This document shows, piece by piece, positions 11,761 to 53,092 of a stretch of 64,000 nt of DNA (within the stretch, counting starts at the first letter, position 1; every line of letters begins with the position of its first letter). The notes under the pieces were generated by a model. It saw only the letters and a list, made by a program, of their open reading frames with translations. It had not been told where the DNA came from and ran no database searches. Origin of the DNA: Penicillus capitatus (Eukaryota > Plantae > Chlorophyta); contig OZ287700.1 of the NCBI GenBank assembly GCA_965649825.1, forward strand, positions 372,001-436,000, given 5' to 3'. A program made the translations under genes and the position numbers.

Positions 11761-11902
11761 TGTAGAAAGCGGATATCGGTCGAAAGGGACGAGGTCACAT
11801 CATGAGTTTAAATGGTGATGCGTGAACCACTGTTGTAGCACTTTCGACAGACGCTAAGATCTTTTGTAAGACGAACTCGTTTCTGCTTACGGACGTTTAA
11901 CA
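11761..11902 (+). repeat. 3' LTR of element 1
   Basis: Identical to 7108-7249 and followed by TSD ATGAC. Confidence 0.97.
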
Positions 11903-11929: not shown

Positions 11930-14900
11930 CTAATTGTCACCGAGACGTTCAAGCATTTCGTCCGCTCCTCTCAAGTAAGGCAAAGCTTCATTGCCCCTTC
12001 CAATTCCGACCAAACAGTTCGCATAGTTTCTAATGCAACGTTCGATGTCCGGATGGTCCGCGTCGCCGTAAAGGCGCTCACACATCTCCAGAGCCCGCTT
12101 GAAGAGCGGCAATGCTTCGTTGATTCTTCCCGCAACTTTTAGCACATGAGCATAGTTATTGACGCAACGGAAGACGTCCGGGTGGTCCGCGTCGCCGTAA
12201 AGGCGCTCACACATCTCCAGAGCCCGCTTGAAGAGCGGCAATGCTTCGTTGATTCTTCCCGCATCTTTTAGCACTTCAGCATAGTTCCCGATGGACAAAA
12301 CGAGGGACGGATGGTCCGCGCCGCCGTAAAGGCGTTCACACATATCCAGAGATTGCTTGAAGAGCGGCAATGCTTCGTTGTTTCTATCCGCAACTTTTAG
12401 CACATGAGCATAGTTATTGACGCAACGGAAGACGTCCGGGTGGTCCGCGTCGCCGTAAAGGCGCTCACACATCTCCAGAGATTGCTTGAAGAGCGGCAAT
12501 GCTTCGTTGATTCTTCCCGCATCTTTTAGCACGTCAGCATAGTTCCCGATGGACAAAACGAGGGACGGATGGTCCGCGCCGCCGTAAAGGCGTTCACACA
12601 TCTCTAGAGATTGCTTGAAGAGCGGCAATGCTTCGTTGATTCTACCCGCAACTTTTAGCACATGAGCATAGTTATTGACGCAACGGAAGACGTCCGGGTG
12701 GTCCGCGTCGCCGTAAAGGCGCTCACACATCTCCAGAGCCCGCTTGAAGAGCGGCAATGCTTCGTTGATTCTTCCCGCATCTTTTAGCACTTCAGCATAG
12801 TTCCCGATGGACAAAACGAGGGACGGATGGTCCGCGTCGCCGTAAAGGCGTTCACACATCTCCAGAGATTGCTTGAAGAGCGGCAATGCTTCGTTGATTC
12901 TTCCCGCAACTTTTAGCACATGAGCATAGTTATTGACGCAACGGAAGACGTCCGGGTGGTCCGCGTCGCCGTAAAGGCGCTCACACATCTCCAGAGCCCG
13001 CTTGAAGAGCGGCAATGCTTCGTTGTTTCTACCCGCATCTTTTAGCACTTCAGCAATGTTCCCGATAGACAAAACGAGGTCCGGATGGTCCGCGTCGCCG
13101 TAAAGGCGTTCACACATCTCCAGAGCCCGCTTGAAGAGCGGCAATGCTTCGTTGTTTCTACCTGCAACTTTATGCCCAAGGGCATAGTTATTGACGCAAC
13201 GTAAAACGTCCGGGTGGTCCGCGTCGCCGTAAAGGCGTTCACACATCTCCAGAGATTGCTTGAAGAGCGGCAATGCTTCGTTGATTCTTCCCGCATCTTT
13301 TAGCACGTCAGCATAGTTCCCGATGGACAAAACGAGGGACGGATGGTCCGCGCCGCCGTAAAGGCGTTCACACATATCCAGAGATTGCTTGAAGAGCGGC
13401 AATGCTTCGTTATTTCTACCCGCAACTTTATGCCCAAGGGCATAGTTATTGACGCAACGGAAGACGTCCGGGTGGTCCGCGTCGCCGTAAAGGCGCTCAC
13501 ACATCTCCAGAGCCCGCTTGTAGAACGGCAATGCTTCGTTGATTCTTCCCGCATCTTTTAGCACTTCAGCATAGTTCCCGATGGACAAAACGAGGGACGG
13601 ATGGTCCGCGCCGCCGTAAAGGCGTTCACACATCTCCAGAGCCCGCTTGTAGAGCGGCAATGCTTCGTTGATTCTTCCCGCAACTTTTAGCACATGAGCA
13701 TAGTTATTGACGCAACGGAAGACGTCCGGGTGGTCCGCGTCGCCGTAAAGGCGCTCACACATCTCCAGAGCCCGCTTGTAGCGCGGCAATGCTTCGTCGA
13801 TTCTTCCCGCATCTTTTAGCACTTCAGCATAGTTCCCGATGGACAAAACGAGGGACGGATGGTCCGCGCCGCCGTAAAGGCGTTCACACATCTCCAGAGA
13901 TTGCTTGAAGAGCGGCAATGCTTCGTTGATTCTTCCCGCAACTTTTAGCACATGAGCATAGTTATTGACGCAACGGAAGACGTCCGGGTGGTCCGCGTCG
14001 CCGTAAAGGCGCTCACACATCTCCAGAGCCCGCTTGTAGAGCGGCAATGCTTCGTCGATTCTTCCCGCATCTTTTAGCACTTCAGCATAGTTCCCGATAG
14101 ACAAAACGAGGGACGGGTGGTCCGCACCGCCGTAAAGGCGCTCACACATCTCCAGAGCCCGCTTGAAGAGCGGCAATGCTTCGTTGTTTCTACCCGCAAC
14201 GTTATGCCCAGCGGCATAGTTATTGACGCAACGTAAAACGTCCGGGTGGTCCGCACCGCCGTAAAGGCGTTCACACATCTCCAGAGCCCGCTTGAAGAGC
14301 GGCAATGCTTCGTTGTTTCCACCCGCATCTTTTAGCACTTCAGCAATGTTCCCGATAGACAAAACGAGGTCCGGATGGTCCGCGTCGCCGTAAAGGCGTT
14401 CACACATCTCCAGAGCCCGCTTGAAGAGCGGCAATGCTTCGTTATTTCTACCCGCAACTTTATGCCCAAGGGCATAGTTATTGACGCAACGTAAAACGTC
14501 CGGGTGGTCCGCGTCGCCGTAAAGGCGCTCACACATCTCCAGAGCCCGCTTGAAGAGCGGCAATGCTTCGTTGTTTCTACCCGCATCTTTTAGCACTTCA
14601 GCAATGTTCCCGATAGACAAAACGAGGTCCGGATGGTCCGCGTCGCCGTAAAGGCGTTCACACATCTCCAGAGCCCGCTTGAAGAGCGGCAATGCTTCGT
14701 TGTTTCTACCTGCAACTTTATGCCCAAGGGCATAGTTATTGACGCAACGTAAAACGTCCGGGTAGTCCGCGTCGCCGTAAAGGCGTTCACACATCTCCAG
14801 AGCCCGCTTGAAGAGCGGCAATGCTTCGTTATTTCTACCCGCAACTTTATGCCCAGCGGCATAGTTATTGACGCAACGTAAAACGTCCGGGTGGTCCGCA

Positions 14901-17900
14901 CCGCCGTAAAGGCGCTCACACATCTCCAGAGCCCGCTTGTAGAACGGCAATGCTTCGTTGATTCTTCCCGCATCTTTTAGCACTTCAGCATAGTTCCCGA
15001 TGGACAAAACGAGGGACGGATGGTCCGCGCCGCCGTAAAGGCGTTCACACATCTCCAGAGCCCGCTTGTAGAGCGGCAATGCTTCGTTGATTCTTCCCGC
15101 AACCTTATGTCCAAGGGCATAGTTATTGACGCAACGTAAAACGTCCGGGTGGTCCGCGTCGCCGTAAAGGCGTTCACACATCTCCAGAGCCCGCTTGAAG
15201 AGCGGCAATGCTTCGTTGTTTCTACCCGCATCTGTTAGCAATCCAGCATAGTTCCCGATGGACATAGCGAGGTCCGGATGGTCCGCACCGCCGAAAAGGC
15301 GCTCACACATTTTGAGGGCTCTGTGAGCATACGATATAGATTCTCGGAACATGCACATCTCTTTGTAGGCCTCTGACATATGTTCGAGTAACTTGAGTTC
15401 TGTGCGATGTTCCTTGCAGTTTTCGCAGCTTTCTTGGAGCGGCAACCCGTTTCGTGCGAGCGATGTCCACAGTTCTCGGTTTGAACGGTCGGTTCTCCAC
15501 TCGCCGATGTATCGGCTGATTGAATCCACTATGATGTCGACGTGATCTCTAATTGTATTCCTTTTTTGTTCTTCGGATTGTTGAGTCTGGCTGGAACTGC
15601 TTTCATCGATGTTGATGAGGAGCTGTTTGACTAGGAGTTGCGTCTCTGCGTGCATGTGGATCTGGTTCGTTTTTTTGTCCCACGAGACATGAGAGAAACG
15701 CTCAAGGAGCTTTATGGAGTTTTCCGTCTTTGTCCGCGATGGCTCATCCTCGAGTTCGTGCCACTTGTACACCCAATCGACGGGCACTCCGTTTGGATCG
15801 AGAAGAGCCAGCTTGGCGAGGAGATCGAGCGAGCGCGGGCCCAAGTCGTTGGGTTCTTTCGAGATCTTTCGCACGCTCGAGTTGAATACGAAGACCATTC
15901 CAGTTGCGACTTCGCCGCTTCGCGTCGCGGAGAGCTTTGCTATCGTTTCGGCTTCCTGCGGTGTGAGTTTGTACCGCAGCATACGTTGCACCCATTCGCC
16001 GGGTTTCCAAACATCTTCGTCCCTCATCACGGAGAAGAACTGCGCGAGGGCCAGCGGAGTGCGAGGCAGCAGATCCATCAAATCGTCCAGATCCTTCGAC
16101 CGCAGTGACTTGGCACACTCAAATTTCTTCGCTAGAATCAGCGCTTCGACTTCGTCGAGCGGCTCGAGTCGAATCGCGCTGCTCTCCCACTCACTCGCTC
16201 CGCACTCTCTCGTCGTGACGATGACGTGTGCCCCTGCCGACGGAACGTACTCGCGAATCAGCTCGAGGTTCGGTGCGTCGTCGAAGACGTACAGACAGCG
16301 CGATCTTCCGAGCTTCTGTTGAACGCGTTTGACCAGCTCTGGCGTGTCGTCGTCCGTGGGAATTTGCAAATATTCCGCGATCTGCAAGAACGCGGCAGTA
16401 ATGCTCTCCCTCGAACCTGAAGGAATCCAGAACTCGTCGTCGTAGCTGTGTTTGCTCCTGAAATGATCGAACGCCTTTATCGCGAGCTGAGTCTTTCCGA
16501 TGCCGCCCGGGCCTGCGACGACCTTCGCGACAACGGACTCGGCGCTTGCTGTGAATGCTTCGACGATTTCGCTCAGTTCGTCCTTTCTCCCGGCGAAGTA
16601 GCGGACAATGTCAGGCGAAGCCAAAGAGTGTTTCTTCTTCGTCTGCAGGCGATCTTCGGTCGTCGGTGCAGACAGTTCGTCTTCGAGGCCCTTCCACACT
16701 CGAAGAAACAGTTCGTTGCCGGATGTCTTGTCTTCGCCGGACGAGACCAAATCGATCTCTTCCTCCTCTTTCTTCTCCCTCCCCCAGTCGGACTGCGCTT
16801 CTTCGCATGCCGGGTTATGCACATTCGATATCAGTTTATCCATGGCGTCGTGCGATGCACGCTTTTCGTGCTCGTGACCTCGAGCGCATAACTCCGCAAG
16901 GTTGCCGAGAAGCTCCGAGCAGAGATCGGGGTCGCTGGACCAGTCCCACTCGTCAGTGCGCTCGACGAGGCTTGCTAGAGTCTCGGCGCTCGCTCTGCGG
17001 ACATCTCCGTCCTTCGCGTGGATGGAGAGCATGGTCAACATTTCCACCACGCCGAACCTCAGAGCCTTGCAGTGTTCGGAGTCGGACGCCCTTCCTTCGA
17101 CCACGAGAGAGGACAGCATCTCGCTGAACACTTCGAAAGCGGACGGATCTTCCATGGCCGCGAAGTGCGCGGTGTTGAGCGCATGGAGGCACGAGAGCCA
17201 GTGATCCTCCCAAACGACTTCGCCGCGCCTCGCTTGATGCATCGCTTGCACCATCGCTTGTAGCCGGACCTGTTGCAGCGCCCTCGCCACGGACTCCGCA
17301 TTCCCGAGATCGAAATCTAGATGCACCGCTTTTCGCACCGCTTGATGGATGCCCGCCGTGCCGTAGAGGAGCCCGACAACGCGTTTTGCGTTACTCGCAT
17401 TGTGGGCGCCACGCTTGGAGAACTTAGAAGATGTCAAGCTGTGCCGAACCAGCATCGCTTCGTACTTCATCGGGTAGTACCTCGCGACGTCGATCACCTT
17501 CCGACAACAGTCCTCGAACTTGGCGTGCAATCCTTCAGGATCGTCCGGATCCAAATCGTCCAATCCGACGTCGCCAAGGATCCTTAAGCACTCGTGCACA
17601 GCGTGCAGGGCGCTGCATTGTGCGGGAAACGTCTTTCTCGAGAAGCTCGCCTTTTCTGGATCGAGCTCATCTAGTAGGAAGTTGGCGAGCCGAACAAGAC
17701 AGCCCGGATCGTCCTCGAAGAGCTCGGCTTCGACAGTCTGAAGCGTGAGTTCAATCGCCTCCGTGAGATATCTGTTGTTGGGAGCGTCGGCACACAGCTT
17801 GTCGCGGACGCTGCCGAAGAAGTCTTTGAGGAGAGGCACGTGTTCGCGGTCAGCGCTGTCGAGGCCGCACAGAGCAAGACACTCACGGACCACCGCCCCT

Positions 17901-18757
17901 CCATTGTCCGTCGCTTCTCCGACGTGCATGTCTTTGAAGGCGCAGAGGACCCTCCTTATGACTACTGCTGGTGCAAGTCTCAGCACGGCGTCGTCCGCCT
18001 CGTTGAACGCTTTCACCACTTGTTCCAGGTTCTGGTACGGCGACCCTTCGTCGAGAATCCTCTGGACGAGGAATCGATCCACTGACGTTAAATCCCTTTG
18101 TATCACCGAACGAGAGGTGCTGCCTTCGGCCGGAGTCTGATGCCCGAGTGCATCGCTGCTGGATGAGGGTTCCCCGTCTCCGCCGCCCCGAAGTCCGAGA
18201 TCTCCCAAGAAGATGAATCTCTCCGCGCCGCGAGTTGGATCAGACACAATGTGAATGCGGCGACGTGCAGCACTCCGCGGCAGACGGGCCAGTCGTCGCG
18301 TTGCCTCCTCCGGGTCTGAGAAGCCCTTGCAGAAAAGCGGAACCGTTGTAGTCTTGGAGAACGGTCCCTTTCGCTCCACAATCCTCCCCGCAAACTTCTC
18401 ACCTACTCGAAAGATCTGGACGAGGCCAGTACCCTCGATCTCAAGCTCGCAGACTTCCTCAGAGTCTCCCTGAGTAGAAAGCTGAAAGCTAGAACATGAA
18501 GAAGAAGAGAGCACTTGTATGCGTGCGCGAGGAGTCTGGGAGCGAGGCAGTTCTGCCCGATAGAAAGACGATCGAGGCACGTGAACCGAGGAGAGGTTCC
18601 TAGCCGTCGTGCCCCGCCGCTGCACGAGCGATTCGCCTCGTGAAGTCAATTCACGGTCGTGTCCTTTGAAGAAGACGTCTGGTGAGGCCTCCCAGCGGCG
18701 GCGATAGTGGGACGAGCGTAAGGGAAACGTCCTGGCGACACTGACAGGATCCCACAT
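11930..18757 (-). CDS. NLR-like STAND NTPase-TPR protein A (2275 aa, intronless)
   Basis: Single ORF with FAGRKDEL, Walker A GPGGIGKT, Walker B CLYVFDDA, VIVTTR, PLALAQ, and 26 TPR-like 43-aa units. True start codon uncertain. Confidence 0.9.
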   Translation of the reverse strand: MWDPVSVARTFPLRSSHYRRRWEASPDVFFKGHDRELTSRGESLVQRRGTTARNLSSVHVPRSSFYRAELPRSQTPRARIQVLSSSSCSSFQLSTQGDSEEVCELEIEGTGLVQIFRVGEKFAGRIVERKGPFSKTTTVPLFCKGFSDPEEATRRLARLPRSAARRRIHIVSDPTRGAERFIFLGDLGLRGGGDGEPSSSSDALGHQTPAEGSTSRSVIQRDLTSVDRFLVQRILDEGSPYQNLEQVVKAFNEADDAVLRLAPAVVIRRVLCAFKDMHVGEATDNGGAVVRECLALCGLDSADREHVPLLKDFFGSVRDKLCADAPNNRYLTEAIELTLQTVEAELFEDDPGCLVRLANFLLDELDPEKASFSRKTFPAQCSALHAVHECLRILGDVGLDDLDPDDPEGLHAKFEDCCRKVIDVARYYPMKYEAMLVRHSLTSSKFSKRGAHNASNAKRVVGLLYGTAGIHQAVRKAVHLDFDLGNAESVARALQQVRLQAMVQAMHQARRGEVVWEDHWLSCLHALNTAHFAAMEDPSAFEVFSEMLSSLVVEGRASDSEHCKALRFGVVEMLTMLSIHAKDGDVRRASAETLASLVERTDEWDWSSDPDLCSELLGNLAELCARGHEHEKRASHDAMDKLISNVHNPACEEAQSDWGREKKEEEEIDLVSSGEDKTSGNELFLRVWKGLEDELSAPTTEDRLQTKKKHSLASPDIVRYFAGRKDELSEIVEAFTASAESVVAKVVAGPGGIGKTQLAIKAFDHFRSKHSYDDEFWIPSGSRESITAAFLQIAEYLQIPTDDDTPELVKRVQQKLGRSRCLYVFDDAPNLELIREYVPSAGAHVIVTTRECGASEWESSAIRLEPLDEVEALILAKKFECAKSLRSKDLDDLMDLLPRTPLALAQFFSVMRDEDVWKPGEWVQRMLRYKLTPQEAETIAKLSATRSGEVATGMVFVFNSSVRKISKEPNDLGPRSLDLLAKLALLDPNGVPVDWVYKWHELEDEPSRTKTENSIKLLERFSHVSWDKKTNQIHMHAETQLLVKQLLINIDESSSSQTQQSEEQKRNTIRDHVDIIVDSISRYIGEWRTDRSNRELWTSLARNGLPLQESCENCKEHRTELKLLEHMSEAYKEMCMFRESISYAHRALKMCERLFGGADHPDLAMSIGNYAGLLTDAGRNNEALPLFKRALEMCERLYGDADHPDVLRCVNNYALGHKVAGRINEALPLYKRALEMCERLYGGADHPSLVLSIGNYAEVLKDAGRINEALPFYKRALEMCERLYGGADHPDVLRCVNNYAAGHKVAGRNNEALPLFKRALEMCERLYGDADYPDVLRCVNNYALGHKVAGRNNEALPLFKRALEMCERLYGDADHPDLVLSIGNIAEVLKDAGRNNEALPLFKRALEMCERLYGDADHPDVLRCVNNYALGHKVAGRNNEALPLFKRALEMCERLYGDADHPDLVLSIGNIAEVLKDAGGNNEALPLFKRALEMCERLYGGADHPDVLRCVNNYAAGHNVAGRNNEALPLFKRALEMCERLYGGADHPSLVLSIGNYAEVLKDAGRIDEALPLYKRALEMCERLYGDADHPDVFRCVNNYAHVLKVAGRINEALPLFKQSLEMCERLYGGADHPSLVLSIGNYAEVLKDAGRIDEALPRYKRALEMCERLYGDADHPDVFRCVNNYAHVLKVAGRINEALPLYKRALEMCERLYGGADHPSLVLSIGNYAEVLKDAGRINEALPFYKRALEMCERLYGDADHPDVFRCVNNYALGHKVAGRNNEALPLFKQSLDMCERLYGGADHPSLVLSIGNYADVLKDAGRINEALPLFKQSLEMCERLYGDADHPDVLRCVNNYALGHKVAGRNNEALPLFKRALEMCERLYGDADHPDLVLSIGNIAEVLKDAGRNNEALPLFKRALEMCERLYGDADHPDVFRCVNNYAHVLKVAGRINEALPLFKQSLEMCERLYGDADHPSLVLSIGNYAEVLKDAGRINEALPLFKRALEMCERLYGDADHPDVFRCVNNYAHVLKVAGRINEALPLFKQSLEMCERLYGGADHPSLVLSIGNYADVLKDAGRINEALPLFKQSLEMCERLYGDADHPDVFRCVNNYAHVLKVADRNNEALPLFKQSLDMCERLYGGADHPSLVLSIGNYAEVLKDAGRINEALPLFKRALEMCERLYGDADHPDVFRCVNNYAHVLKVAGRINEALPLFKRALEMCERLYGDADHPDIERCIRNYANCLVGIGRGNEALPYLRGADEMLERLGDN
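11933..15292 (-). repeat. Coding tandem array: 25 x 129-bp TPR units plus a capping unit
   Basis: Units begin G(D/G)AD(H/Y)P every 129 bp from 15292 to 12067. DV(L/F)RCVNN and (S/D)LVLSIGN types alternate almost strictly. Confidence 0.95.
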
Positions 18758-20462
18758 CTATCGAATGTGACATTGAAACACGAGTCTTCGGCAGAGAGTT
18801 CGTCACCTTTGAAGCTGTGTAGAAGCTGAATTGGCTCGAACCCGGTGTGCATTCCCTGTGTCGAAGGCCCTGATGGACAGCATGCAACTCTGATAGCAGG
18901 TTTCGAACAGTCGGCGATTACCTGGACCGGACGAGGCAGTTTGCGGCGCTCGCCGTCAACCACCTTCGTCCCTTCGGAGATTTCCATCCGGTAAGGCTTC
19001 CAGTCCGCGTCCGCTACCGGCGCCGTCGTACGGATTCCGGTCGACACGCCTCTATCAGTAGTCGGCGAACGTACGCACTGGAGGCGCGAAGTCGTGGACG
19101 AGCATGCGGATGTGTCAGGGACCTTACCGGTTTTACAAATCTGCAGTACTCTCCTTCTTTGCCTGACCATTCGGACGTTTTCCCGGAGGAGAGAGAACCG
19201 TCGCGCATTTTGCCGATGCGCGGCGACGCGCCGTTGCTCTCGGCGACGTTGCGAAGAAGATGAGGTGTACGATTCTTCATGGCAAGAGGTTCGGATTTGA
19301 CTGCGCGAACACGTCCTGGTGTTCTTGGAAATGAAACACGTAAACAGAGAAACTCAGATAGATGGTACGGATACTCTGCTGGCAGGATGATTGCGCAATC
19401 GGCGCAATGCGCCTAATGAAACAAATCGAAAGTGCTCATGCGCAGTTGACTGCTGAGCGATCGTCGAGGACGTCGACGATGAGCCTGTGGGCTATGGAGG
19501 GCATCATGCTACTTGCATCGGTTTAGAGTATCAGTCGCCGCCGAAGCAGATCCTTTTAACGCTGATGGAGGCTTCGCATGTTTGGGAACACTCGAGATGC
19601 AGTCTGGGAATCGTCAGAGTGGAGAAGAATGTAATGCTTTAGCCATCCGCGAATGGGCAGTCTCGAGCGCAAAGCAAAGAAGCCGAGTGTGGACGCTTCG
19701 TCGCAGCGCACGATGTGGTCGCGTGGAGTGGACGACGGACGAAAGCTCACGGATCCGAAGCATCCTGCGCTTCTCACACGTCGAAGAGCTCATTAGTTTT
19801 GCATTTCACCGTCCTATGGCAAACGCGGCAGAGAGGCACAGCAGATACATCGTCCAGCACTGTTTCCTACTGATGTACGCGGTTCAAGCGTCGAATGGGT
19901 GAAGGAGAAGGATCTCCGGATCAACGACTCTCCAAATCCGGGAGTATTGCGGCAGGAAAGCCGACAAAGGGATACTGAAGATACGTCTCGGAACAAACAA
20001 AAAGACAGACGCGATCATACGATTCTGGTTCTTTAGTGTCGTTTGGTAATAACTTTGTATAGCAGTCCGCCCACGACCGATGTGAGCTCTCCCCAACTGA
20101 CATTAGGCATTTCAGAATGTGATTTGTAATTTCAACTGCGTTGCTGCAAAACAATGGACAGGCTCTTTTTAGCCTAAAAGAATTCGATCGTTTAGTTGCA
20201 AGAAGACTCTCGAAATTTATCAATTTCTTTCAGACCGATGACATCTCTCCGAGGGATTAGGACACATCGATACTGATAACTGTGTCGAGTAGTTATGGCG
20301 AGGAAGAAACTAGAGTCTCAGTCAAAGACAAAGTGCTACTACTCCTCTGTCTTCAGACGTTGACAACGAGATCTCACAAAGCAGACCCGTGTTTGAGATA
20401 CTTTCGCAGAACTTTGGACTGTCAAATCATGATCCACGACAAGAGAGAAGCCATTGGATATC

Positions 20463-37116: not shown

Positions 37117-39225
37117 TCAATCCTGTCGAGACGGATCGGAGCCATTAATGTCTGCGGCGTCTGTCTTCTGTCGCTGAAGCGGATCGAAGAGGATTTCTGG
37201 CGTCTTGCGTTGAACGGTGCCTCTGAGTTTCTGTTCTAAGTGGTACGCGGCTTTGAGCAGCATTGACTCCTGCCAGTGCTTTCCGATGATTTGCAATCTA
37301 CGCATCCGCCGCGACCGCACACGTCAGAACGGTGCTCTCCCTTCTGCAGGTCGCTTACCCAATGGGCCGGTCTTGACTGTCGCATCCGACCGGCACCGAT
37401 ATCGCTGGCATTCCCAAGAAATTGGCCGCCGGCATGTAACGCATGATGACCGAGGTGAGCATGAGGTTGTGTTCTCCAGCCCTCCTGGCAGCCGGGTGGA
37501 TGTCCGGAGCCGTTATGGGCGTCGTCGGCGTGACGAGACAGTCGATTGTTTCCATGGCCTTCTTAAAGTGGACGCCCATCCTCGTCCGAATGCACTACAC
37601 AGGCAATAGTCACATCTCAATAAAAACTGCGTGTCGTGTACTCGCCTGAGCTTGGATGTACTCCTGCGACCTGAAGTTCTCGGCAATGGTCAGGTTCATT
37701 TGGATGTCGAGGTTCATCTTCTTTCTCACGCGGCTGTTCGAAAAGTACGGGTGCATGGCGTGTCGCATCTCGGAAGAGATGGTGGTCGTGTGGGCAATGC
37801 GCAGAAATTCGAGTTCGGGGATGGAGACAGAGACGATGGTGCCACCCAGGTCCCGCAGGACGTCGAGCATCGCCTGGCACCTCTCCTTCACGTCATGCGC
37901 CGCATCGTTGAACCACTGCCGCTCGCACGTCGGCATAGAGGCCAGAGAGATACCAATCGTACCTCCCAGTAGACTCCGAACCTCAACCCCTCGAGGGGCT
38001 TCTCGGATCCGGAGATCCGAGGCAACTGGACGGGAGGTTCTGGTCTGGCGAGAAGCGTGTACAGGATCATCGCGTCCTCGACGGAACCGGCGATCGGTCC
38101 GTAGCAGCAGACGGTGTAGTCCAGGGCCCTTCCGCGCTGGGGGACATCCCTCCCGTGTGTCGGCTTGAGACCGACGACGCCGCAGAAGCTCGACGGGATC
38201 CGAATCGATCCGCCGCCGTCGGATCCTGACGTACACCTGCCAAAAGCAACACCTCCATCTGCGTGCCTTACCCACGCTCAGAGGACAGAGCCCGGATGCG
38301 ACGACCGCTGCGCCTCCGGACGAAGATCCTCCTGGGTAGCAGTCGCGGTTCCACGGATTGACGGGCGTGCCGTGGATGACGTTGAGACCCGTGACGCCGA
38401 GTCCGATCTCGTGCATGTTCGTCTTGCCCAAGAACAGACCGCCCAGCTTCCTGAGGGAGGCAACGATCGGAGCCTCTCTGTCTGTCTCTCCGACGGTGTG
38501 AGCGATGTGCGCCGTCCCGCACGTCGTCACGTGGTCTTGGGCATGCATCGAGTCCTTCGCGCAGAAAGGGACGCCGTCGAGCAGAGAAAGCGGCCGGCCG
38601 GATGCATAGCGCTCCGTCGAGGCAGTGGCCTGCTCGAGAACCTTCTCCTCTCGGAAGGATATGAACCAGTTGAGGTCCGGGTGATCGGCAATCGCGGCTG
38701 CAATTCTCTGGGCCACCTGCAGCGGCGTCGTCCTCCCTGAACACCTCGCCCGCTCGATCAGGAGAAACACGTCTTCGTGCCTCTACCAGTCCGATAGGCC
38801 TCCGCGTACTCTCGGACAGTCGGGAGGTCCGACTTCTGCGGCGTGGAGGCGGAGATGATGGAGTGCACCTGATCCACGACGTCGCTGTCGCTCTCCTTCT
38901 CAACGGTGACGTGATCGGGAAGGATGAGGGGTTCAGTGAGCGACGTGGGTGTGTACGTTGGCTTCTCCGGAAGGATCGTTTCGCAGAGGACCTAAGACGG
39001 CGTTCGTAATGCGCAGACAACGTGTCGTCTTGAGAAGCGCCGCACCTGCGGCAGACCGCTTTTGCGTCGGAGGACAGCCTCGACAAGCGTGCCTATTGGA
39101 GTCCTGACGAACCACAGAAAGATCCGCAGCAATCTGCCACGCAGAACGGGCGCTCTGAGCGTCCGCAGAGTGTAGGGCGCATCGCGGATTCTGTGAGCTG
39201 GCTGCAGACGACAGACGCGAGGCAT
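37117..39225 (-). CDS. Amidase-signature enzyme, fatty acid amide hydrolase-like
   Basis: [49 protein letters not shown]. The N-terminus resembles plant FAAH. Confidence 0.88.
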
Positions 39226-44046: not shown

Positions 44047-45751
44047 AGGAAGAGAGGTCGATCGTATGAACCTGTCTGCCATGAGCAGGATAGACGATCT
44101 TGGTTATGTGTAACATATTTCTTTGCCTTCTGGTTTGTATTGATGCATGTGTTCCTAGCAGATCGTGCGTGAATCAGGTTTAAAACCCCTTTCGCCAAAG
44201 ACATCCTGGGCTTCAGCAGAAAGTGTCGTCAGTCAATCGGAGAAGCAAATCAGCGCGCCTCGCACTAACTGCATTGTCAGAAAACTCGTTCGTTCTGATG
44301 CATTCGATGCGCATCACAGAAGAAGAGGTGTTGGCCGCCGCAGGCATGTTAAGCTTACATCCTTCCTTCAGGATTCCAATAGTCAAACGCGTTGCAACTA
44401 GCACAACGAATCTCCACAGTGTAAGCATTTCGGTCACCCAAACGCCGTTCGTCGATCATTCTGATCCTGTATCTGCCGCCTCCGAATCTTCTTCTCTGGC
44501 ATCTCTCCACGAAATCACGGCGTCAGCAGCTGTTTTGTTTCGTTCGCCTGCGCATCCTCAAGTGATCCTTGGTCGTGCTTACCTGCCGCATGCAACTCAG
44601 TCCTTCAAACGTTCGACGCTTGAGCCGCGTCCGCCAGTACGGAGCAGTGCTGGACGGTGCATCTGCTGTGCCTCCTTGCCTCATTCGCCTACGGATAACA
44701 GAATAACAACTGGTGAGCTCTTCGACGTGTCGTAAGCGCAAGATGTTTCGGATCCTTTTGCGCTCTCGTCCTTCGTCCACTACGCGACCACATCACGCGC
44801 TGCGGCGTAGCATCGACACTCTTCTTTGTCGCTTTGCACTCCAGACTGCTCATTCGTTGGTCCTGGAACAACACATCCTTCTCAATTCCGAGGATTCCCC
44901 GAAAGACTTCGCAGACCATTCCCAATTCTGTGAATCCTCTCTCGGCGTTGAACGTATCCGCTTCGGCAGTGACTGACACACTGAACCGGTGTCAGCCAGC
45001 CGCATGATGCCCTCCATGACCCAAAAGCTCGTCGTCGACGTCGTCGACGATCGCTCAGCGGCCACTGCGCACGAGCACTTTCGATTTACTTCATCAAATG
45101 CATTTTGCTCGTTCAGCAATCCATCTGCCGTCAGAACATCCTTACCGTCTATCTGAGTTTGTCTGTTTACGTGTTTCATTTCCAAGAACACCAGGACGTA
45201 TTCGCGCAGTCAAATCCGAACCTCTTGCCATGAAGAATCGTGCATCTCGTCGTCTTCACAGCGTCACCGAGAGCATCGGCGTGTCGCCGCGCATCGTCGA
45301 AATGTGCGACGGTTCTCTCTCCTGCACGCATCCCTCCAAACGGCAAGGCAGAGAAGGAGACCACTGGGAATTTGTCAAGACGGTAAGGGTCCTGACACAT
45401 TCGCGTGCTCATCCACGATTCGTTCTCCAGTGTGTACGTTCGCCGACTACCGACGGAGGCGCGTCGGCCCGAATCCGTACGACGGCGCCGGTAGCAGACG
45501 CGGACTGCGCGTTTTATCAGAAGAAAAGCTTCGAGGGAACGAAGGTGGTCGACGGCGAGCGCCGCAAGCCGCCTCGTCGTGTCGAGGTAAGTTCTGACCG
45601 TTCGAAATCTCGCCATCTGAGTTGCATGCTGTCCATCAGAACCCGCGGCGGAGGGAGTGTGCATCGGGTTCGAGTCAATTCAAAGTCCACACAGTTTCAA
45701 AGGTGACGAATTCTCTGCCGAAGACGCGTGTTTCAATTTCACATTCGATAG

Positions 45752-48700
45752 ATGTGGGATCCTGTCAGCGTCGCCAGGACGCTTCCTTCGCTCGTGCCTC
45801 GCCGTCGCCGCCGCGGGGAGGCCGCACCAGGCGTCTTCTTCAGAGGATTCGACCGTGAAGAGACTCGCCGCGGCAAATCGCGCGTGCCTACAGGCAGGAC
45901 AGCCAAGAATCTGCCATCGGTCCACTCAAGTGGTTCGTCCTTCGATCGACAAGAGCAGCCTCACTCCCAGATTCCTCAGGCATGCACACAAGTGCTGTCT
46001 TCTTCTTCCTGTTCTAGCTTTCAACTTTTAACTCAGGGAGACTCTGAGGAAGTCTGCGAGTTTGAGATCGAGGGTACTGGCCTCGTGCAGATCTTTCGAA
46101 AAGGAGAGAACTTCGCCGGGAGGATTGTGGAGCGAGTGGGACCGTTCTCCAAGACTACAACGGTTCCGCTTTTCTGCAAGGGCTTCTCAGACCCAGAGGA
46201 AGCGATTCGCCGTCTGGCCCGGCTGCCGTGGACCGCTGCACGTCGCCGCATTCACATTCTGTCCAATCCAACTCGCGGCACCGAGAGGTTCATCTTCTTG
46301 GGAGATCTTGGACTTTGGGGTGGCGGAAACGGGGAACCCTCATCCAGCAGCGATGCGCTCGGGCACCAGACTCCGGCCGAAGGCAGCGCCTCTCGTTCGG
46401 TGATTCAAAGGGCTTTGACGTCAGTGGAACGATTCCTCGTCCAGAGGATTCTCGACGAAGGGTCGCCGTACCAGAACCTGGAACAAGTGGTGAAAGCGTT
46501 CAACGAGGCGGAGGACGCCGTGCTGAGACTTGCACCAGCAGTAGTCATAAGGAGGGTCCTCGGTGCCTTCGGAGACATGCACGTCGGAGAAGCGACGGAC
46601 AATGGAGGGGCAGTGGTCCGCGAGTGCCTTGCTCTGTGCGGCCTCGACAGCGCTGACCGCGAACACGTGCCTCTCCTCAAAGACTTCTTCGACAGCATCC
46701 GCGACAAGCTGTGCACCGACACTCCCAGCAGCAGATATCTCACGGAGGCGATTGAGCTTACGCTTCAGACTGTCGAAGCCGAGCTCTTCGAGGACGATCC
46801 GGGCTGTCTTGTTCGGCTCGCCAAGTTTCTACTAGACGAGCTCGATCCGGAAAAGGCGAGCTTCTCGAGAAAGACGTTTCCCGCACAATGCAGCGCCCTG
46901 CACGCTGTGCACGAGTGCTTGAGGATCCTTGGCGACGTCGGATCGGACGATTTGGATCCGAACAAGCTTGAAGGATTGCACGCAAGGGTCGAGGAATGTT
47001 GTCGGAAGGTGATCGACGTCGCGGGGTACTACCCGATGAAGTACGAAGCGATGCTGGTTCGACACAGCATGACATCTTCTCAGTTCTCCAAGCGAGGCGC
47101 CCACAATGCGAGTAACGCAAAACGCGTTGTCGGGCTTTTCTACGGCACGGCGGGCATCCATCAAGCGGTGCGAAAAGCGGTCCATCTGGACTTCGATCTC
47201 GGAGATGCGGAGTCCGTGGCGAGTGCGCTGCAACAGGTCCGGCTACAAGCGATGGTGCAAGCGATGCATCAAGCGAGGCGCGGCGAAGTCGTTTGGGAGG
47301 ATCAGTGGCGCACGTGCCTCCGTGCGCTCAACGCCGCACACTTCGCGGTCATGGAAGATCCGTCTGCTTTCGAAGTGTTCAGCGAGATCCTGTCCTCTCT
47401 CGTGCTCGAAGAAAGGGCGTCCGACTCCGAACACTGCAAGGCTCTGAGGTTCGGCGTGGTGGAAATGTTGACCATGCTCTCCATCCACGCGAAGGACGGA
47501 GATGTCCGCAGAGCGAGCGCCGAGACTCTAGCAAGCTTCGTCGAGCGCAAGGACGAGTGGGACTGGTGCAGCGACCGCGATCTCTTCTTGGAGCTTCTCG
47601 ATAACCTGGCGGAGTTATGTGCTCGAGGTTTTGATCACGAGAAGCGTGCAGCTGACGACGCCATGGAAAGACTGATTTCGAATGTGCATAACCCGGCATG
47701 TGAAGAAGCCCTGTCCGAGTGGCGGGGGGAGAAGAAAGCGGACGAAGGGGTAGATTCGGTCTCGTCCGGCGAAGACAAAACAGCCGGCAACGAACTGTTT
47801 CTTCGAGTGTGGAAGGGTCTCGAAGACGAACTGTCTGCACCGACTACGGAAGTTCTCCCGCGGCCGAAGAAGAAACACTCTTTGGCCTCGCCTGACATTG
47901 TCCGCTACTTCGCCGGGAGGAAGGATGAGCTGAAAGCAATCGTCGAAGCCTTTGCAGAGAGCTCCGAGTCCGTTGTCGCGAAGGCCATCATATGCCCGGG
48001 CGGCATCGGAAAGACCCAGCTCGCGATAAAGGCGTTCGATTACTTCAGGAGCAAACACAGCTACGACGACGAGTTCTGGATTCCTTCAGGTTCGAGGGAG
48101 AGCATCACTGCCGCGTTCTTGCAGATCGTGGAATATCTGCAAATTCCCACGGACGACGACACACCAGAGCTGGTCAGACGCGTTCGAGAAAAGCTCGGAA
48201 GATCGCGCTGTCTGTACGTCTTCGACGACGCACCGAACCTCGAGCTGATTCGCGAGTACGTTCCGCCGGCAGGCGCACACGTCATCGTCACGACGAGAGA
48301 GTGCGGAGCGAGCGAGTGGGCAAGAAACGCGGTTCGACTCGAGCCGCTCGACGAGATCGAAGCGCGGATTCTAGCCGAGAAATTTGAATGTGCCAAGTCA
48401 CTGCGGTCGAAGGATCTGGACGATTTGATGGATCTGCTGCCTCGGACTCCGCTGGCCCTCGCGCAGTTCTTCTCCGTGATGAGGGACGAAGATGTGTGGA
48501 ACCCCGGTGAATGGGTGCAACACATGCTGCGGTACAAACTCACACCGCGGGAAGCCGAAACGATAGCAAAGCTCTCCGCGACGCGAAGCGGCGAAGTCGC
48601 AACTGGAATGATCTTCGTATTCAACTCGAGCGTGCGAAAGATCTCGAAAGAACCCAACGACTTGGGCCCACGCTCGCTCGACCTCCTCGCCAAGCTGGCG

Positions 48701-51700
48701 CTCCTCGATCCAAACGGAGTGCCCGTCGATTGGGTGTACAAGTGGCTCGAACTCGAGGATGAATCCTCCAAGACAAGAACAGAGAACTTCATGAGGCTCC
48801 TTGAGCGTTTCTCTCATGTCTCGTGGGACAAAAGAACGAACCAGATCCACATGCACGCAGAGACACAACTTCTAGTCAAACAGCTCCTCATCAACATCGA
48901 TGAAAGCAGTTCCAGCCACACTCAAGAATCCGAAGAACAAAACAAGAAAACAATTAGAGATCACGTCGACACCATAGTGCATTCAATCGGCCGATACATC
49001 GGCGAGTGGAGAACCGACCGTTCAAACCGAGAACTGTGGACATCGCTCGCACGAAACGGGTTGCCGCTCCAAGAAAGCTGCGAAAACTGCAAGGAACATC
49101 GCACAGAACTCAAGTTACTCGAACATATGTCAGAGGCCTACAAAGAGATGTGCATGTTCCGAGAATCTATATCGTATGCTCACAGAGCCCTCAAGATGTG
49201 TGAGCGCCTTCACGGAGACTCGGACCATCCGGACCTCGTCATTCCCATCAACAACTATGCTTCTGGGCTAGATACCGCGGGTAGAATCAACGAAGCGTTG
49301 CCGCTCTACGAGCGGGCACTGGAGATGTGTGAGCGCATCCACGGCGAGGCGGACCATCCGTCCCTCGTCACTAGTATCGGGAACTATGCCCTTGGGCTAC
49401 AAGCCGTAGGAAGAGTAAACGAAGCGTTGCCGCTCTACAATCGGGCTCTGGAGATGTGTGAGCGCATCCACGGCGACGCGGATCATCCGTCCCTCGAATG
49501 TTGCATCAACAACTATGCCCTTGGGCTAGATGATGCGGGTAGAATTAACGAAGCGTTGCCGCTCTACAATCGGGCTCTGGAGATGTGTGAGCGCATCCAC
49601 GGCGAGGCGGACCATCCGTCCCTCGTCACTAGTATCGGGAACTATGCTTCTGGGCTAGATACCGCGGGAAGAATTAACGAAGCGTTGCCGCTCTACAAGC
49701 GGGCAATGGAGATGTGTGAGCGCATCCACGGCGACGCGGATCATCCGTCCCTCGAATGTTGCATCAACAACTATGCTTCTGGGCTACAAAACGCGGGAAG
49801 AATACACGAAGCGTTGCCGCTCTACAATCGGGCTCTGGAGATGTGTGAGCGCATCCACGGCGAGGCGGACCATCCGGACCTCGTCATTCGCATCGGCAAT
49901 TATGCCCTTGGGCTACAAGCCGTAGGAAGAGTAAACGAAGCGTTGCCGCTCTACAAGCGGGCACTGGAGATGTGTGAGCGCATCCACGGCGAGGCGGACC
50001 ATCCGGACCTCGTCATTCGCATCGGCAATTATGCCCTTGGGCTAAAGGCCGTGGGTAGAATACACGAAGCGTTGCCGCTCTACAAGCGGGCTCTGGAGAT
50101 GTGTGAGCGCATCCACGGCGAGGCGGACCATCCGGACCTCGTCATTCGCATCGGCAATTATGCCCTTGGGCTAAAGGCCGTGGGTAGAATACACGAAGCG
50201 TTGCCGCTCTACAAGCGGGCACTGGAGATATGTGAGCGCATCCACGGCGACGCGGATCATCCGTCCCTCGAATGTTGCATCAACAACTATGCTTCTGGGC
50301 TAGATACCGCGGGAAGAATTAACGAAGCGTTGCCGCTCTACAATCGGGCTCTGGAGATGTGTGAGCGCATCCACGGCGAGGCGGACCATCCGGACCTCGT
50401 CATTCGCATCGGCAATTATGCCCTTGGGCTAAAGGCCGTGGGTAGAATACACGAAGCGTTGCCGCTCTACAAGCGGGCTCTGGAGATGTGTGAGCGCATC
50501 CACGGCGAGGCGGACCATCCGGACCTCGTCATTCGCATCGGCAATTATGCCCTTGGGCTAAAGGCCGTGGGTAGAATACACGAAGCGTTGCCGCTCTACA
50601 AGCGGGCTCTGGAGATATGTGAGCGCATCCACGGCGACGCGGATCATCCGTCCCTCGAATGTTGCATCAACAACTATGCTTCTGGGCTAGATACCGCGGG
50701 AAGAATTAACGAAGCGTTGCCGCTCTACAATCGGGCTCTGGAGATGTGTGAGCGCATCCACGGCGAGGCGGACCATCCGGACCTCGTCATTCGCATCGGC
50801 AATTATGCCCTTGGGCTAAAGGCCGTGGGTAGAATACACGAAGCGTTGCCGCTCTACAAGCGGGCTCTGGAGATATGTGAGCGCATCCACGGCGAGGCGG
50901 ACCATCCGGACCTCGACCGTTGCATCAACAACTATGCCCTTGGGCTAGATGATGCGGGTAGAATCAACGAAGCGTTGCCGTTCTACAAGCGGGCACTGGA
51001 GATGTGTGAGCGCATCCACGGCGACGCGGATCATCCGTCCCTCGAATGTTGCATCAACAACTATGCTTCTGGGCTACAAAACGCGGGAAGAATACACGAA
51101 GCGTTGCCGCTCTACAAGCGGGCTCTGGAGATGTGTGAGCGCATCCACGGCGAGGCGGACCATCCGGACCTCGTCATTCGCATCGGCAATTATGCCCTTG
51201 GGCTACAAGCCGTAGGAAGAGTAAACGAAGCGTTGCCGCTCTACAAGCGGGCACTGGAGATGTGTGAGCGCATCCACGGCGAGGCGGACCATCCGGACCT
51301 CGTCATTCGCATCGGCAATTATGCCCTTGGGCTAAAGGCCGTGGGTAGAATACACGAAGCGTTGCCGCTCTACAAGCGGGCTCTGGAGATGTGTGAGCGC
51401 ATCCACGGCGAGGCGGACCATCCGGACCTCGTCATTCGCATCGGCAATTATGCCCTTGGGCTAAAGGCCGTGGGTAGAATACACGAAGCGTTGCCGCTCT
51501 ACAAGCGGGCACTGGAGATGTGTGAGCGCATCCACGGCGAGGCGGACCATCCGTCCCTCGTCAATAGTATCGGGAACTATGCTTCTGGGCTAGATGACGC
51601 GGGTAGAATCAACGAAGCGTTGCCGCTCTATGAGCGGGCACTGGAGATGTGTGAGCGCATCCACGGCGAGGCGGACCATCCGGACCTCGACCGTTGCATC

Positions 51701-53092
51701 AACAACTATGCCCTTGGGCTAGATGATGCGGGTAGAATCAACGAAGCGTTGCCGTTCTACAAGCGGGCACTGGAGATGTGTGAGCGCATCCACGGCGAGG
51801 CGGACCATCCGGACCTCGACCGTTGCATCAACAACTATGCCCTTGGGCTAGATGATGCGGGTAGAATCAACGAAGCGTTGCCGTTCTACAAGCGGGCACT
51901 GGAGATGTGTGAGCGCATCCACGGCGAGGCGGACCATCCGTCCCTCGTCAATAGTATCGGGAACTATGCTTCTGGGCTAGATACCGCGGGAAGAATTAAC
52001 GAAGCGTTGCCGCTCTACAAGCGGGCACTGGAGATGTGTGAGCGCATCCACGGCGACGCGGATCATCCATATCTCGAACGTTGCATCAACAACTACGCCT
52101 CTGGGCTACAAAACGCGGGAAGAATACACGAAGCGTTGCCGCTCTACAAGCGGGCTCTGGAGATGTGTGAGCGCATCCACGGCGAGGCGGACCATCCGTC
52201 CCTCGTCACTAGTATCGGGAACTATGCCCTTGGGCTACAAGCCGTAGGAAGAGTAAACGAAGCGTTGCCGCTCTACAAGCGGGCACTGGAGATGTGTGAG
52301 CGCATCCACGGCGACGCGGATCATCCATATCTCGAACGTTGCATCGGCAATTATGCCCTTGGGCTAAAGGCCGTGGGTAGAATACACGAAGCGTTGCCGC
52401 TATACAAGCGGGCTCTGGAGATGTGTGAGCGCATCCACGGCGAGGCGGACCATCCGGACCTCGTCATTCGCATCGGCAATTATGCCCTTGGGCTAAAGGC
52501 CGTGGGTAGAATACACGAAGCGTTGCCGCTCTACAAGCGGGCACTGGAGATGTGTGAGCGCATCCACGGCGAGGCGGACCATCCGTCCCTCGTCAATAGT
52601 ATCGGGAACTATGCTTCTGGGCTAGATGACGCGGGTAGAATCAACGAAGCGTTGCCGCTCTATGAGCGGGCACTGGAGATGTGTGAGCGCATCCACGGCG
52701 ACGCGGACCATCCGGACCTCGTCATTCGCATCGGCAACTATGCCCTTGGGCTAGATGACGCGGGTAGAATCAACGAAGCGTTGCCGCTCTACAATCGGGC
52801 TATGGAGATGTGTGAGCGCATCCACGGCGAGGCGGACCATCCGTCCCTCGTCACTAGTATTGGGAACTATGCTTCTGGGCTAGATGACGCGGGTAGAATT
52901 AACGAAGCGTTGCCGCTCTACAAGCGGGCACTGGAGATGTGTGAGCGCATCCACGGCGACGCGGACCATCTGGACCTTGAACGATGCATGAGAATCTATG
53001 CTAACTGTTTGGTAGGAATAGGAAGGGGCAATGAAGCTTCGCCTTACTTGCAAAAAGTGGACGAAATGCTTAAACGACTTAGTGACAATTAA
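45752..53092 (+). CDS. NLR-like STAND NTPase-TPR protein B (2446 aa, intronless)
   Basis: Paralogue of 11930..18757. Walker A reads CPGGIGKT, Walker B CLYVFDDA, followed by 30 TPR-like 43-aa units. Confidence 0.9.
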   Translation: MWDPVSVARTLPSLVPRRRRRGEAAPGVFFRGFDREETRRGKSRVPTGRTAKNLPSVHSSGSSFDRQEQPHSQIPQACTQVLSSSSCSSFQLLTQGDSEEVCEFEIEGTGLVQIFRKGENFAGRIVERVGPFSKTTTVPLFCKGFSDPEEAIRRLARLPWTAARRRIHILSNPTRGTERFIFLGDLGLWGGGNGEPSSSSDALGHQTPAEGSASRSVIQRALTSVERFLVQRILDEGSPYQNLEQVVKAFNEAEDAVLRLAPAVVIRRVLGAFGDMHVGEATDNGGAVVRECLALCGLDSADREHVPLLKDFFDSIRDKLCTDTPSSRYLTEAIELTLQTVEAELFEDDPGCLVRLAKFLLDELDPEKASFSRKTFPAQCSALHAVHECLRILGDVGSDDLDPNKLEGLHARVEECCRKVIDVAGYYPMKYEAMLVRHSMTSSQFSKRGAHNASNAKRVVGLFYGTAGIHQAVRKAVHLDFDLGDAESVASALQQVRLQAMVQAMHQARRGEVVWEDQWRTCLRALNAAHFAVMEDPSAFEVFSEILSSLVLEERASDSEHCKALRFGVVEMLTMLSIHAKDGDVRRASAETLASFVERKDEWDWCSDRDLFLELLDNLAELCARGFDHEKRAADDAMERLISNVHNPACEEALSEWRGEKKADEGVDSVSSGEDKTAGNELFLRVWKGLEDELSAPTTEVLPRPKKKHSLASPDIVRYFAGRKDELKAIVEAFAESSESVVAKAIICPGGIGKTQLAIKAFDYFRSKHSYDDEFWIPSGSRESITAAFLQIVEYLQIPTDDDTPELVRRVREKLGRSRCLYVFDDAPNLELIREYVPPAGAHVIVTTRECGASEWARNAVRLEPLDEIEARILAEKFECAKSLRSKDLDDLMDLLPRTPLALAQFFSVMRDEDVWNPGEWVQHMLRYKLTPREAETIAKLSATRSGEVATGMIFVFNSSVRKISKEPNDLGPRSLDLLAKLALLDPNGVPVDWVYKWLELEDESSKTRTENFMRLLERFSHVSWDKRTNQIHMHAETQLLVKQLLINIDESSSSHTQESEEQNKKTIRDHVDTIVHSIGRYIGEWRTDRSNRELWTSLARNGLPLQESCENCKEHRTELKLLEHMSEAYKEMCMFRESISYAHRALKMCERLHGDSDHPDLVIPINNYASGLDTAGRINEALPLYERALEMCERIHGEADHPSLVTSIGNYALGLQAVGRVNEALPLYNRALEMCERIHGDADHPSLECCINNYALGLDDAGRINEALPLYNRALEMCERIHGEADHPSLVTSIGNYASGLDTAGRINEALPLYKRAMEMCERIHGDADHPSLECCINNYASGLQNAGRIHEALPLYNRALEMCERIHGEADHPDLVIRIGNYALGLQAVGRVNEALPLYKRALEMCERIHGEADHPDLVIRIGNYALGLKAVGRIHEALPLYKRALEMCERIHGEADHPDLVIRIGNYALGLKAVGRIHEALPLYKRALEICERIHGDADHPSLECCINNYASGLDTAGRINEALPLYNRALEMCERIHGEADHPDLVIRIGNYALGLKAVGRIHEALPLYKRALEMCERIHGEADHPDLVIRIGNYALGLKAVGRIHEALPLYKRALEICERIHGDADHPSLECCINNYASGLDTAGRINEALPLYNRALEMCERIHGEADHPDLVIRIGNYALGLKAVGRIHEALPLYKRALEICERIHGEADHPDLDRCINNYALGLDDAGRINEALPFYKRALEMCERIHGDADHPSLECCINNYASGLQNAGRIHEALPLYKRALEMCERIHGEADHPDLVIRIGNYALGLQAVGRVNEALPLYKRALEMCERIHGEADHPDLVIRIGNYALGLKAVGRIHEALPLYKRALEMCERIHGEADHPDLVIRIGNYALGLKAVGRIHEALPLYKRALEMCERIHGEADHPSLVNSIGNYASGLDDAGRINEALPLYERALEMCERIHGEADHPDLDRCINNYALGLDDAGRINEALPFYKRALEMCERIHGEADHPDLDRCINNYALGLDDAGRINEALPFYKRALEMCERIHGEADHPSLVNSIGNYASGLDTAGRINEALPLYKRALEMCERIHGDADHPYLERCINNYASGLQNAGRIHEALPLYKRALEMCERIHGEADHPSLVTSIGNYALGLQAVGRVNEALPLYKRALEMCERIHGDADHPYLERCIGNYALGLKAVGRIHEALPLYKRALEMCERIHGEADHPDLVIRIGNYALGLKAVGRIHEALPLYKRALEMCERIHGEADHPSLVNSIGNYASGLDDAGRINEALPLYERALEMCERIHGDADHPDLVIRIGNYALGLDDAGRINEALPLYNRAMEMCERIHGEADHPSLVTSIGNYASGLDDAGRINEALPLYKRALEMCERIHGDADHLDLERCMRIYANCLVGIGRGNEASPYLQKVDEMLKRLSDN
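49214..53089 (+). repeat. Coding tandem array: 29 x 129-bp TPR units plus a capping unit
   Basis: Units begin G(D/E)(A/S)DH every 129 bp from 49214 to 52955. Confidence 0.95.

Follow-up and report, generated by a model that had tools for sequence, protein, structure and literature searches.

Do two linked, divergently oriented receptor-like genes, one of which lacks the first glycine of its P-loop, form a pair of sensor and executor, or are they duplicates, one of which has acquired a mutation? This question is raised by a stretch of 64,000 nucleotides (nt) from the Penicillus capitatus contig OZ287700.1 (assembly GCA_965649825.1), hereafter the window, whose positions are used as coordinates throughout. 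The window contains two NB-ARC-TPR genes, further called copy A and copy B:

11930..18757, - strand: long open reading frame (ORF) of copy A, 2275 codons, with NB-ARC and TPR_10/TPR_12 matches
45752..53092, + strand: long ORF of copy B, 2446 codons, with NB-ARC, TPR_10 and TPR_12 matches

A sequence-only reading of this locus had listed two substitutions in copy B, LWGG (TGG, 46316) and CPGGIGKT (TGC, 47993), at positions where A has LRGG and GPGGIGKT, and the codons were given exactly; it took both as losses of motifs in a protein with an intact frame, and proposed a sensor/executor split. We consider a plainer explanation to be the probable one, though by no means assured: A and B are paralogues of a green-algal STAND/NLR-like receptor gene, and the cysteine at position 748 of B (C748) is a young, probably weakening substitution, not a sign of division into sensor and executor.

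The First P-Loop Glycine of Copy B

The Walker A motifs of the two copies are located as follows:

47993..48016, + strand: Walker A of B, CPGGIGKT, with C748 encoded by TGC at 47993-47995
16513-16490, - strand: Walker A of A, GPGGIGKT, with G749 encoded by GGC at 16513-16511

They were compared with 27 relatives, 25 of which were identified by a search with the non-repeat part of A, and two (P0029 and P0030) via cluster look-up; all 27 come from large ENA contigs, with bacterial NB-ARC-TPR proteins ranking far behind. The GPGGIGK[ST] motif is invariant in A and in 27/27 relatives, and cysteine at its first position is unique to B. A more distant set was obtained by an exhaustive HMMER search with the NB-ARC domain of B against 1.84 billion cluster representatives; among the best 150, a recognisable Walker A is present in 142, and its first residue is glycine in 136 of these, alanine in five, asparagine in one, and cysteine in none, that is, glycine or alanine in 141/142. 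The direction of the change is given by the DNA of three outgroup genes, namely, P0001 and P0002 (loci L001 and L002), which are both paralogues of a sister species, and P0003 (L003) from a more distant outgroup species: G>C is polarised to the B lineage, and so is the neighbouring V>I replacement (GTA/GTC>ATA). Hence, the loss of the first Walker A glycine, as claimed for B, is real and derived. C748 aligns with the first glycine of the GM(G/P)GLGKT P-loops of the plant CC-NLRs ZAR1, NRC1, and NRC3, and B deviates from the canonical pattern [AG]xxxxGK[ST] by the cysteine at position 1, retaining G, K, and T at positions 6-8.

The coincidence of two motif changes in one copy carries little weight. 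Outside the repeats, 117 of the 1054 residues aligned between the two copies are different (11%), and at this divergence two differences in 12 motif residues are a chance-level count (expected mean 1.3, probability of at least two 0.39). Judging from the family alignment, only the Walker A change of the two falls on a constrained site. Given the rate of B at conserved columns (5/238), at least one of the seven invariant Walker A residues would be changed with a probability of about 0.14; the G>C substitution is thus real and unusual, but not extraordinary.

A single base could also stem from an error in the reads or their assembly, or the individual sequenced could carry a rare allele; in either case the change would have no meaning for the species. 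No second assembly of the species was found, the exact B product is not on record, and the closest of the 5.8 billion proteins searched is 80% identical. Still, we regard an error or a rare allele as unlikely, as the change is a substitution, not a homopolymer indel, and a B-specific change (V>I) is found in the neighbouring codon as well, so that this segment has its own history.

The beta-1 strand preceding the Walker A motif (A 16525-16511, B 47981-47995) is uniquely changed in both copies: the family pattern is K[AV][IV]VG, while A has KVVAG, with three consecutive replacements, and B has KAIIC.

We take G216 of tobacco N to be the first glycine of its GMGGVGKT motif, and G1244 of CFTR to be position 1 of GxxxxGK, reckoned from K1250. 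The P-loop mutation G216E abolished the function of N and was dominant negative (as cited in PMC2951382), and in CFTR the G1244E mutation affects gating (PMC5881446). As G>C in B is derived, unique in the family, and at a site with glycine or alanine in 141/142 distant relatives, one may fairly suspect that its P-loop is weakened or disabled, and B may have been disabled very recently.

The LRGG/LWGG Position

The second of the two changes lies near the N-terminus, in the tail of a small domain:

46037..46327, + strand: N-terminal domain of B, small and lineage-specific, with an LGL-x-GGG tail at its end (LGLWGGG = 46307-46327)
46316-46318, + strand: W189 codon TGG of B, the variable site of the LGL-x-GGG motif
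18190-18188, - strand: R190 codon CGG of A, the counterpart of W189 in B

Copy B reads L188-W189-G190-G191 where A has LRGG. Across the 26 sequences extending into this region, the family motif is G-x-L-G-L-x-G-G-G, in which the first G, LGL, and GGG are invariant, and the position of the arginine is occupied by R in 16 sequences, W in five, L in four, and P in one. The haplotype of B, CTT GGA CTT TGG GGT GGC GGA AAC, with four linked sites, is identical in P0001 and P0002, both of which keep GPGGIGKT, while A shares four linked states (CTC, CG., GGC, GAC) with the outgroup P0003; tryptophan is also present in the distant members P0014 and P0018. As the DNA of B, P0001, and P0002 is identical here, W belongs to an old haplotype carried by three genes, and in two of these the P-loop is normal. 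By these alignments, LWGG of B is an inherited variant at an unconserved position, and carries no signal.

A ubiquitin-like domain with a C-terminal LRGG was considered for this region and rejected, as there is no Pfam ubiquitin match, no fold match, and the arginine is variable. The small N-terminal domain has no Pfam match at all. In its AlphaFold 2 model (pLDDT 64.5), 4 beta elements are followed by 2 alpha and 2 beta elements and a disordered tail, an arrangement that we judge to be unlike the ubiquitin beta-grasp; a Foldseek search with this moderate-confidence model yielded no PDB match at E <= 0.001, and ubiquitin was not among the matches. A profile search added one homologue only, P0299, making this an orphan domain. 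The resemblance to ubiquitin-like LRGG domains is superficial (A reads ...LGLRGGG, and some relatives have a stretch resembling 'MQIF...'), whereas in A and B the motif precedes the rest of a 2000-aa protein, and the arginine is not conserved. The supposed loss of an LRGG motif by B has therefore to be withdrawn.

State of Copy B

Apart from the Walker A position, the NB-ARC region of B is similar to that of A. The Walker B motif LYVFDD, HVIVTTRE (sensor-1 TTR), and LPRTPLAL (GLPL-like) are identical in A and B and kept in the family, and the IHMHAETQ stretch, taken as the MHD-equivalent by eye, is present in both. At family columns conserved in at least 95% of sequences, five unique changes are observed in B (of 238) and seven in A, and the overall rate at conserved sites is 8/235 for B and 10/235 for A, the family range being 0-12%; by this measure B appears to have no excess of changes at conserved sites. 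The A-B dN/dS ratio over 1054 non-repeat codons is 0.39, compared to 0.27-0.34 in other family pairs.

Both proteins end in an array of TPR units:

49187..53056, + strand: TPR array of B, 30 units of 43 amino acids (129 nt)
about 15319-11966, - strand: TPR array of A, 26 units of 43 amino acids

The array of B is indeed distinct and longer, as had been noted from the sequence: 30 units compared to 26, with the consensus ALEMCERIHG... in B and ALEMCERLYG... in A. The mean unit identity at the nucleotide level is 0.88 in B and 0.86 in A. Variation is focused on the same stretches in both copies, namely, positions 16-22, 26-31, 34/35, and 40-43, where the proportion of nonsynonymous differences (pN) is about equal to or above that of synonymous ones (pS), while at the low-variation positions of the B array pN is 0.005 vs pS of 0.132. 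The variable stretches are helix surface, and the rest is scaffold.

The 2446-codon frame of B is open from 45752 to 53092, with neither stops nor frameshifts. Under neutrality, about 8.6 stops would be expected in 7 kb on the private branch of B (dS about 0.033), and none is observed (P about 2e-4); for the non-repeat part alone the expectation is about 3.9, again with none observed (P 0.02). These numbers bear on the suggestion that B is a long-standing pseudogene. In favor of it one may list the absent first Walker A glycine and the ratio of nonsynonymous to synonymous changes (N:S) on the B branch, which is not significantly below neutral; however, neither the lack of stops and frameshifts, nor the low pN compared to pS outside the variable stretches of the array, nor the absence of an excess of changes at conserved sites fits a long-dead gene, and we find a long-standing pseudogene highly improbable. 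As far as the sequence tells, B is mostly not decaying and is otherwise well kept.

We therefore return to the reading of C748 as a change in one of two receptor genes that is young compared to the history of the gene and probably weakening. By analogy with other STAND proteins, each copy would be a self-contained receptor: a ligand would dock onto the hypervariable faces of the TPR array, its binding would release the NB-ARC switch with exchange of ADP for ATP, and oligomerisation would then bring the N-terminal modules together. In B, the beta-carbon and sulfur introduced at the first P-loop glycine would probably lower nucleotide affinity or impair switching, and B would thereby be a hypomorphic or recently disabled allele.

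Several points weigh against this explanation. The receptor mechanism of A and B is inferred from the domain family, and the biochemical effect of G>C is putative. Alanine occupies the first Walker A position in 5/142 distant relatives and cysteine is just slightly larger, hence B may bind ATP normally, and a functional B is, by its sequence, quite possible. The split of the array into scaffold and hypervariable positions was drawn from the same data on which it was evaluated and is partly circular, the co-location with the variable positions of A being its non-circular part. On the B branch N:S is 52:24, which is not significantly below neutral (p = 0.058), while 67:52 on the A branch is (p = 6e-7), and some relaxation in B is possible; the two branches do not differ significantly (Fisher p = 0.10; parsimony counts), and their comparison is undermined by mosaic gene conversion and by the younger age of B-specific changes.

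Origin of the Two Copies and Comparison With Paired Receptors

Copies A and B form an inverted duplication (12043-19906 vs 52463-44601, 83.8% identity over 7885 nt), which is the sole large repeat of the window. The duplicated unit extends from approximately 1.15 kb 5' of the long ORF to approximately 25 nt 3' of the stop codon, and the starts of the two ORFs are 27 kb apart (18757 vs 45752) in divergent orientation. In the sister species the two genes (L001 and L002) form a same-strand tandem pair, 15 kb apart on one ENA contig, between a kinase gene and NTPase_1/YL1 genes, while the third species has a single copy (L003), also between kinase and NTPase_1/YL1 genes. Given the inverted orientation and the 27-kb distance in P. 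capitatus compared to the tandem or single-copy arrangement in relatives, an inversion or rearrangement has occurred. In sliding windows we observe mosaic conversion in both species: B resembles P0001 in some places, A resembles P0002 in others, and elsewhere A and B are 96-99% alike. The duplication predates the split from the sister species, and since then the copies have been homogenised in patches by gene conversion.

This history allows for an evaluation of the sensor/helper model, in which B is a P-loop-independent sensor or decoy with its own array, hetero-oligomerising with a P-loop-competent executor A. As hallmarks of plant pairs, PMC9528088 lists genes that stand head to head with hundreds to a few thousand nt of intergenic DNA in common, divergent NLRs in a cluster, a sensor with an integrated domain, and one-to-one co-dependence, with the helper P-loop alone being needed in some pairs. 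Similar to RGA4/RGA5, RRS1/RPS4, and Pik-1/Pik-2 (PMC9528088), A and B are two linked, divergently oriented NLR-like genes, one of which has a non-canonical P-loop residue. Moreover, the array of B is distinct and longer, the NODs of A and B are 90-99% identical in patches, making co-assembly physically plausible, the sensor P-loop is dispensable in some plant pairs, and duplication can yield pairs, as exemplified by Pi5-1/Pi5-2 (PMC9528088).

However, A and B do not share a short head-to-head promoter: 27 kb with GEMIN5-like, amidase, and PMP-repeat ORFs lie between their starts, as opposed to the hundreds to few thousand nt shared in validated plant pairs, and the duplicated upstream region is present separately in front of each copy. 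No integrated or additional domain is seen in either; the two are colinear between the acceptor site and the stop codon, with the same domains, and B has no extra Pfam matches. Nor are they divergent, co-evolving partners; they are near-identical recent paralogues, with 90% identical NOD proteins and conversion tracts at 96-99%, and they carry TPR, not LRR, repeats. A retains a full hypervariable array of 26 units, which a pure executor would not need. To the structural hallmarks we added, in this analysis, conservation of the asymmetry across species, and here both members of the sister-species pair keep GPGGIGKT and the next species is single-copy; the P-loop asymmetry is, because of this, one young substitution. 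With A and B departing from plant pairs in all three structural hallmarks and in the cross-species comparison, the proposed sensor/executor split is disfavoured, and we consider a sensor/helper pair quite unlikely.

A related model assigns to B the role of a brake: being P-loop-impaired, it would assemble with A, or with itself, into inactive mixed oligomers, thereby damping signalling in a dominant-negative manner. The dominant-negative G216E allele of tobacco N (as cited in PMC2951382), the laz5-D P-loop alleles, for which assembly with the wild type into inactive oligomers has been proposed (PMC2951382), and the high similarity of the A and B NODs speak for it. Like such alleles, namely, tobacco N G216E and Arabidopsis laz5-D2, B has one P-loop substitution in an otherwise intact NLR, but these are induced mutants with measured phenotypes, while the effect of the B substitution is putative. 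The structural arguments given against a sensor/helper pair apply equally to a brake; in addition, an array with a receptor-type invariant scaffold and hypervariable positions would not be needed by a mere brake, and we see this model as very unlikely.

A third possibility combines the youth of the change with interaction: in duplicates that are still subject to gene conversion, B may, as a result of the P-loop substitution, now require A or inhibit it via mixed oligomers, so that the two would be a nascent pair. We hold such a nascent pair to be quite improbable. Of these models, we continue with the young, probably weakening substitution in one of two plain paralogues.

Domain Architecture and Related Systems

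Copies A and B have the same architecture, comprising a small orphan beta/alpha domain, an alpha-solenoid, NB-ARC, and 43-aa TPR units, which are near-identical and arranged in a long array. In B, the two middle domains are at the following positions:

46394..47866, + strand: all-alpha middle domain of about 490 aa, ARM/HEAT-like solenoid; limits approximate
47921..48505, + strand: NB-ARC domain, Pfam limits, aa 724-918

The Pfam NB-ARC scores are 34.6 bits for B and 43.9 bits for A (gathering cut-off 23.5), and TPR_10 and TPR_12 match with E about 1e-200; PF27058, listed for some relatives, is absent from the Pfam scan of A and B. The model of the middle domain (pLDDT 70, pTM 0.71) contains 22 helices, and its fold matches are weak, of the importin/catenin type, with low TM-scores and the best E = 3e-3. 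Pfam, fold, and profile searches name no executioner domain in the N-terminal modules. In three shorter relatives (P0022, P0023, and P0025) the small N-terminal domain is joined straight to NB-ARC, without the ~490-aa alpha-solenoid, and hence the latter is an optional module.

By sequence, the nearest solved relatives of the B NB-ARC domain are plant NRC3, ZAR1, and NRC1. Unlike these plant CC-NLRs, A and B have no CC, TIR, or RPW8 N-terminus and contain TPR instead of LRR; the similarity is weak (E about 2e-4) and confined to the NB subdomain. A parallel is provided by the NLR-like STAND proteins of fungi, whose TPR/ANK/WD repeats are highly conserved (Dyrka et al., 2014, PMC4986451) and in which NB-ARC is likewise followed by near-identical TPR units of about 42 aa, variation is found at few surface positions, the repeat number differs between copies, and there are signs of repeat shuffling and gene conversion. 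High internal repeat identity, focused variation, and a difference in repeat number (26 vs 30) are all observed in A and B. On the other hand, A and B have a green algal host and a unit of 43 aa, and their N-terminal modules match no known fungal effector domain.

Gene Structure at the 5' End

The intactness of the 2446-aa frame, as originally stated, holds for its openness over 45752-53092, but probably not for its entire length as coding sequence. The features of this region are:

46034..46036, + strand: putative 3' splice acceptor CAG of B, based on conservation in five genes
18472-18470, - strand: putative 3' splice acceptor CAG of A, based on conservation in five genes
44601..45751, + strand: duplicated upstream region of B, approximately 1.15 kb, 75-84% identical to its A counterpart, without a conserved reading frame
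18758..19906, - strand: duplicated upstream region of A, from the A/B inverted repeat match

In 5/5 genes (A, B, L001, L002, and L003) a polypyrimidine tract and CAG followed by GG stand directly before 'GDSEE', and the coding exon of B probably starts at 46037 (GGA GAC TCT = GDS). Indels of 1-2 nt are observed in these genes just 5' of the conserved acceptor-like CAG, the sequence 5' of this site contains frame-breaking indels and stops in L002 and L003, and the A-B identity over the first ~77 codons drops close to the noncoding upstream level. Because the acceptor-like site is conserved, the frame upstream of it is broken, and the A-B identity is low, the first ~94 codons of the long ORF of B (~94-95 in A/B) are probably noncoding, being an intron or a 5' region.

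The region of ~1.15 kb further upstream contains stops in all frames in the five genes compared, with the frame shifting between copies, and neither exon 1 nor the true start codon was found. It could be a promoter, a 5' untranslated region, an intron, or an old repeat. This region is alignable in five genes of three species with few gaps.

Neighborhood of the Copies

Long ORFs are sparse across the window. Three of them, unrelated to A and B, lie between the two copies, and one is found 3' of B:

20787-22403, - strand: ORF of a GEMIN5-TPR-like protein
37610-38770, - strand: ORF of an amidase fragment
41561-43267, + strand: ORF of a Chlamydia-PMP-repeat protein
61236-62438, - strand: intron-less FEN1 ORF

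The best named relatives of the FEN1 protein are green algal, with Bryopsis (58%) followed by Volvox, Chlorella, and Coccomyxa, and one ENA contig with a 95%-identical FEN1 also carries a relative of the A/B gene. Together with the sparse long ORFs and the two retrotransposons listed next, this FEN1 marks the window as eukaryotic, with a green alga as its probable source.

Each copy has an LTR (long terminal repeat) retrotransposon at its 3' side:

7101-11902, + strand: LTR retrotransposon 3' of A, ending 27 nt from the A stop codon
55619-60424, - strand: LTR retrotransposon shortly beyond the 3' end of B

Both are of the Ty3/gypsy type, with LTRs of 145-150 nt that are 98-99% identical, and ORFs for reverse transcriptase, RNase H, integrase, and protease; both are apparently young. 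A common mobile element was considered as the source of the A/B duplication and rejected, as the two flanking elements are dissimilar to each other by blastn.

The segment 27620-28599 matches the far upstream part of L001 (76%) and the region directly 3' of the L003 gene (84%), being either a repeat of the dispersed kind or what is left of an older synteny.

Implications

For annotation, the result is a modest one: one duplicate of an algal NB-ARC-TPR gene has a unique change at an invariant P-loop glycine, and a false lead is removed, as neither the LRGG/ubiquitin-like motif nor the analogy with paired NLRs is supported. The genes are members of a green-algal family of NLR-like proteins, small and lineage-restricted, that combine fungal-style hyper-conserved TPR arrays with orphan N-terminal modules; the family has some interest as to how intracellular immune receptors evolved within the green lineage. 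If C748 is fixed, expressed, and A-dependent, the locus would offer an uncommon glimpse of how receptor pairing begins; and if the two copies are a nascent pair, they would show how sensor/helper or brake/receptor pairs can arise from plain duplicates with no integrated domain, and outside land plants.

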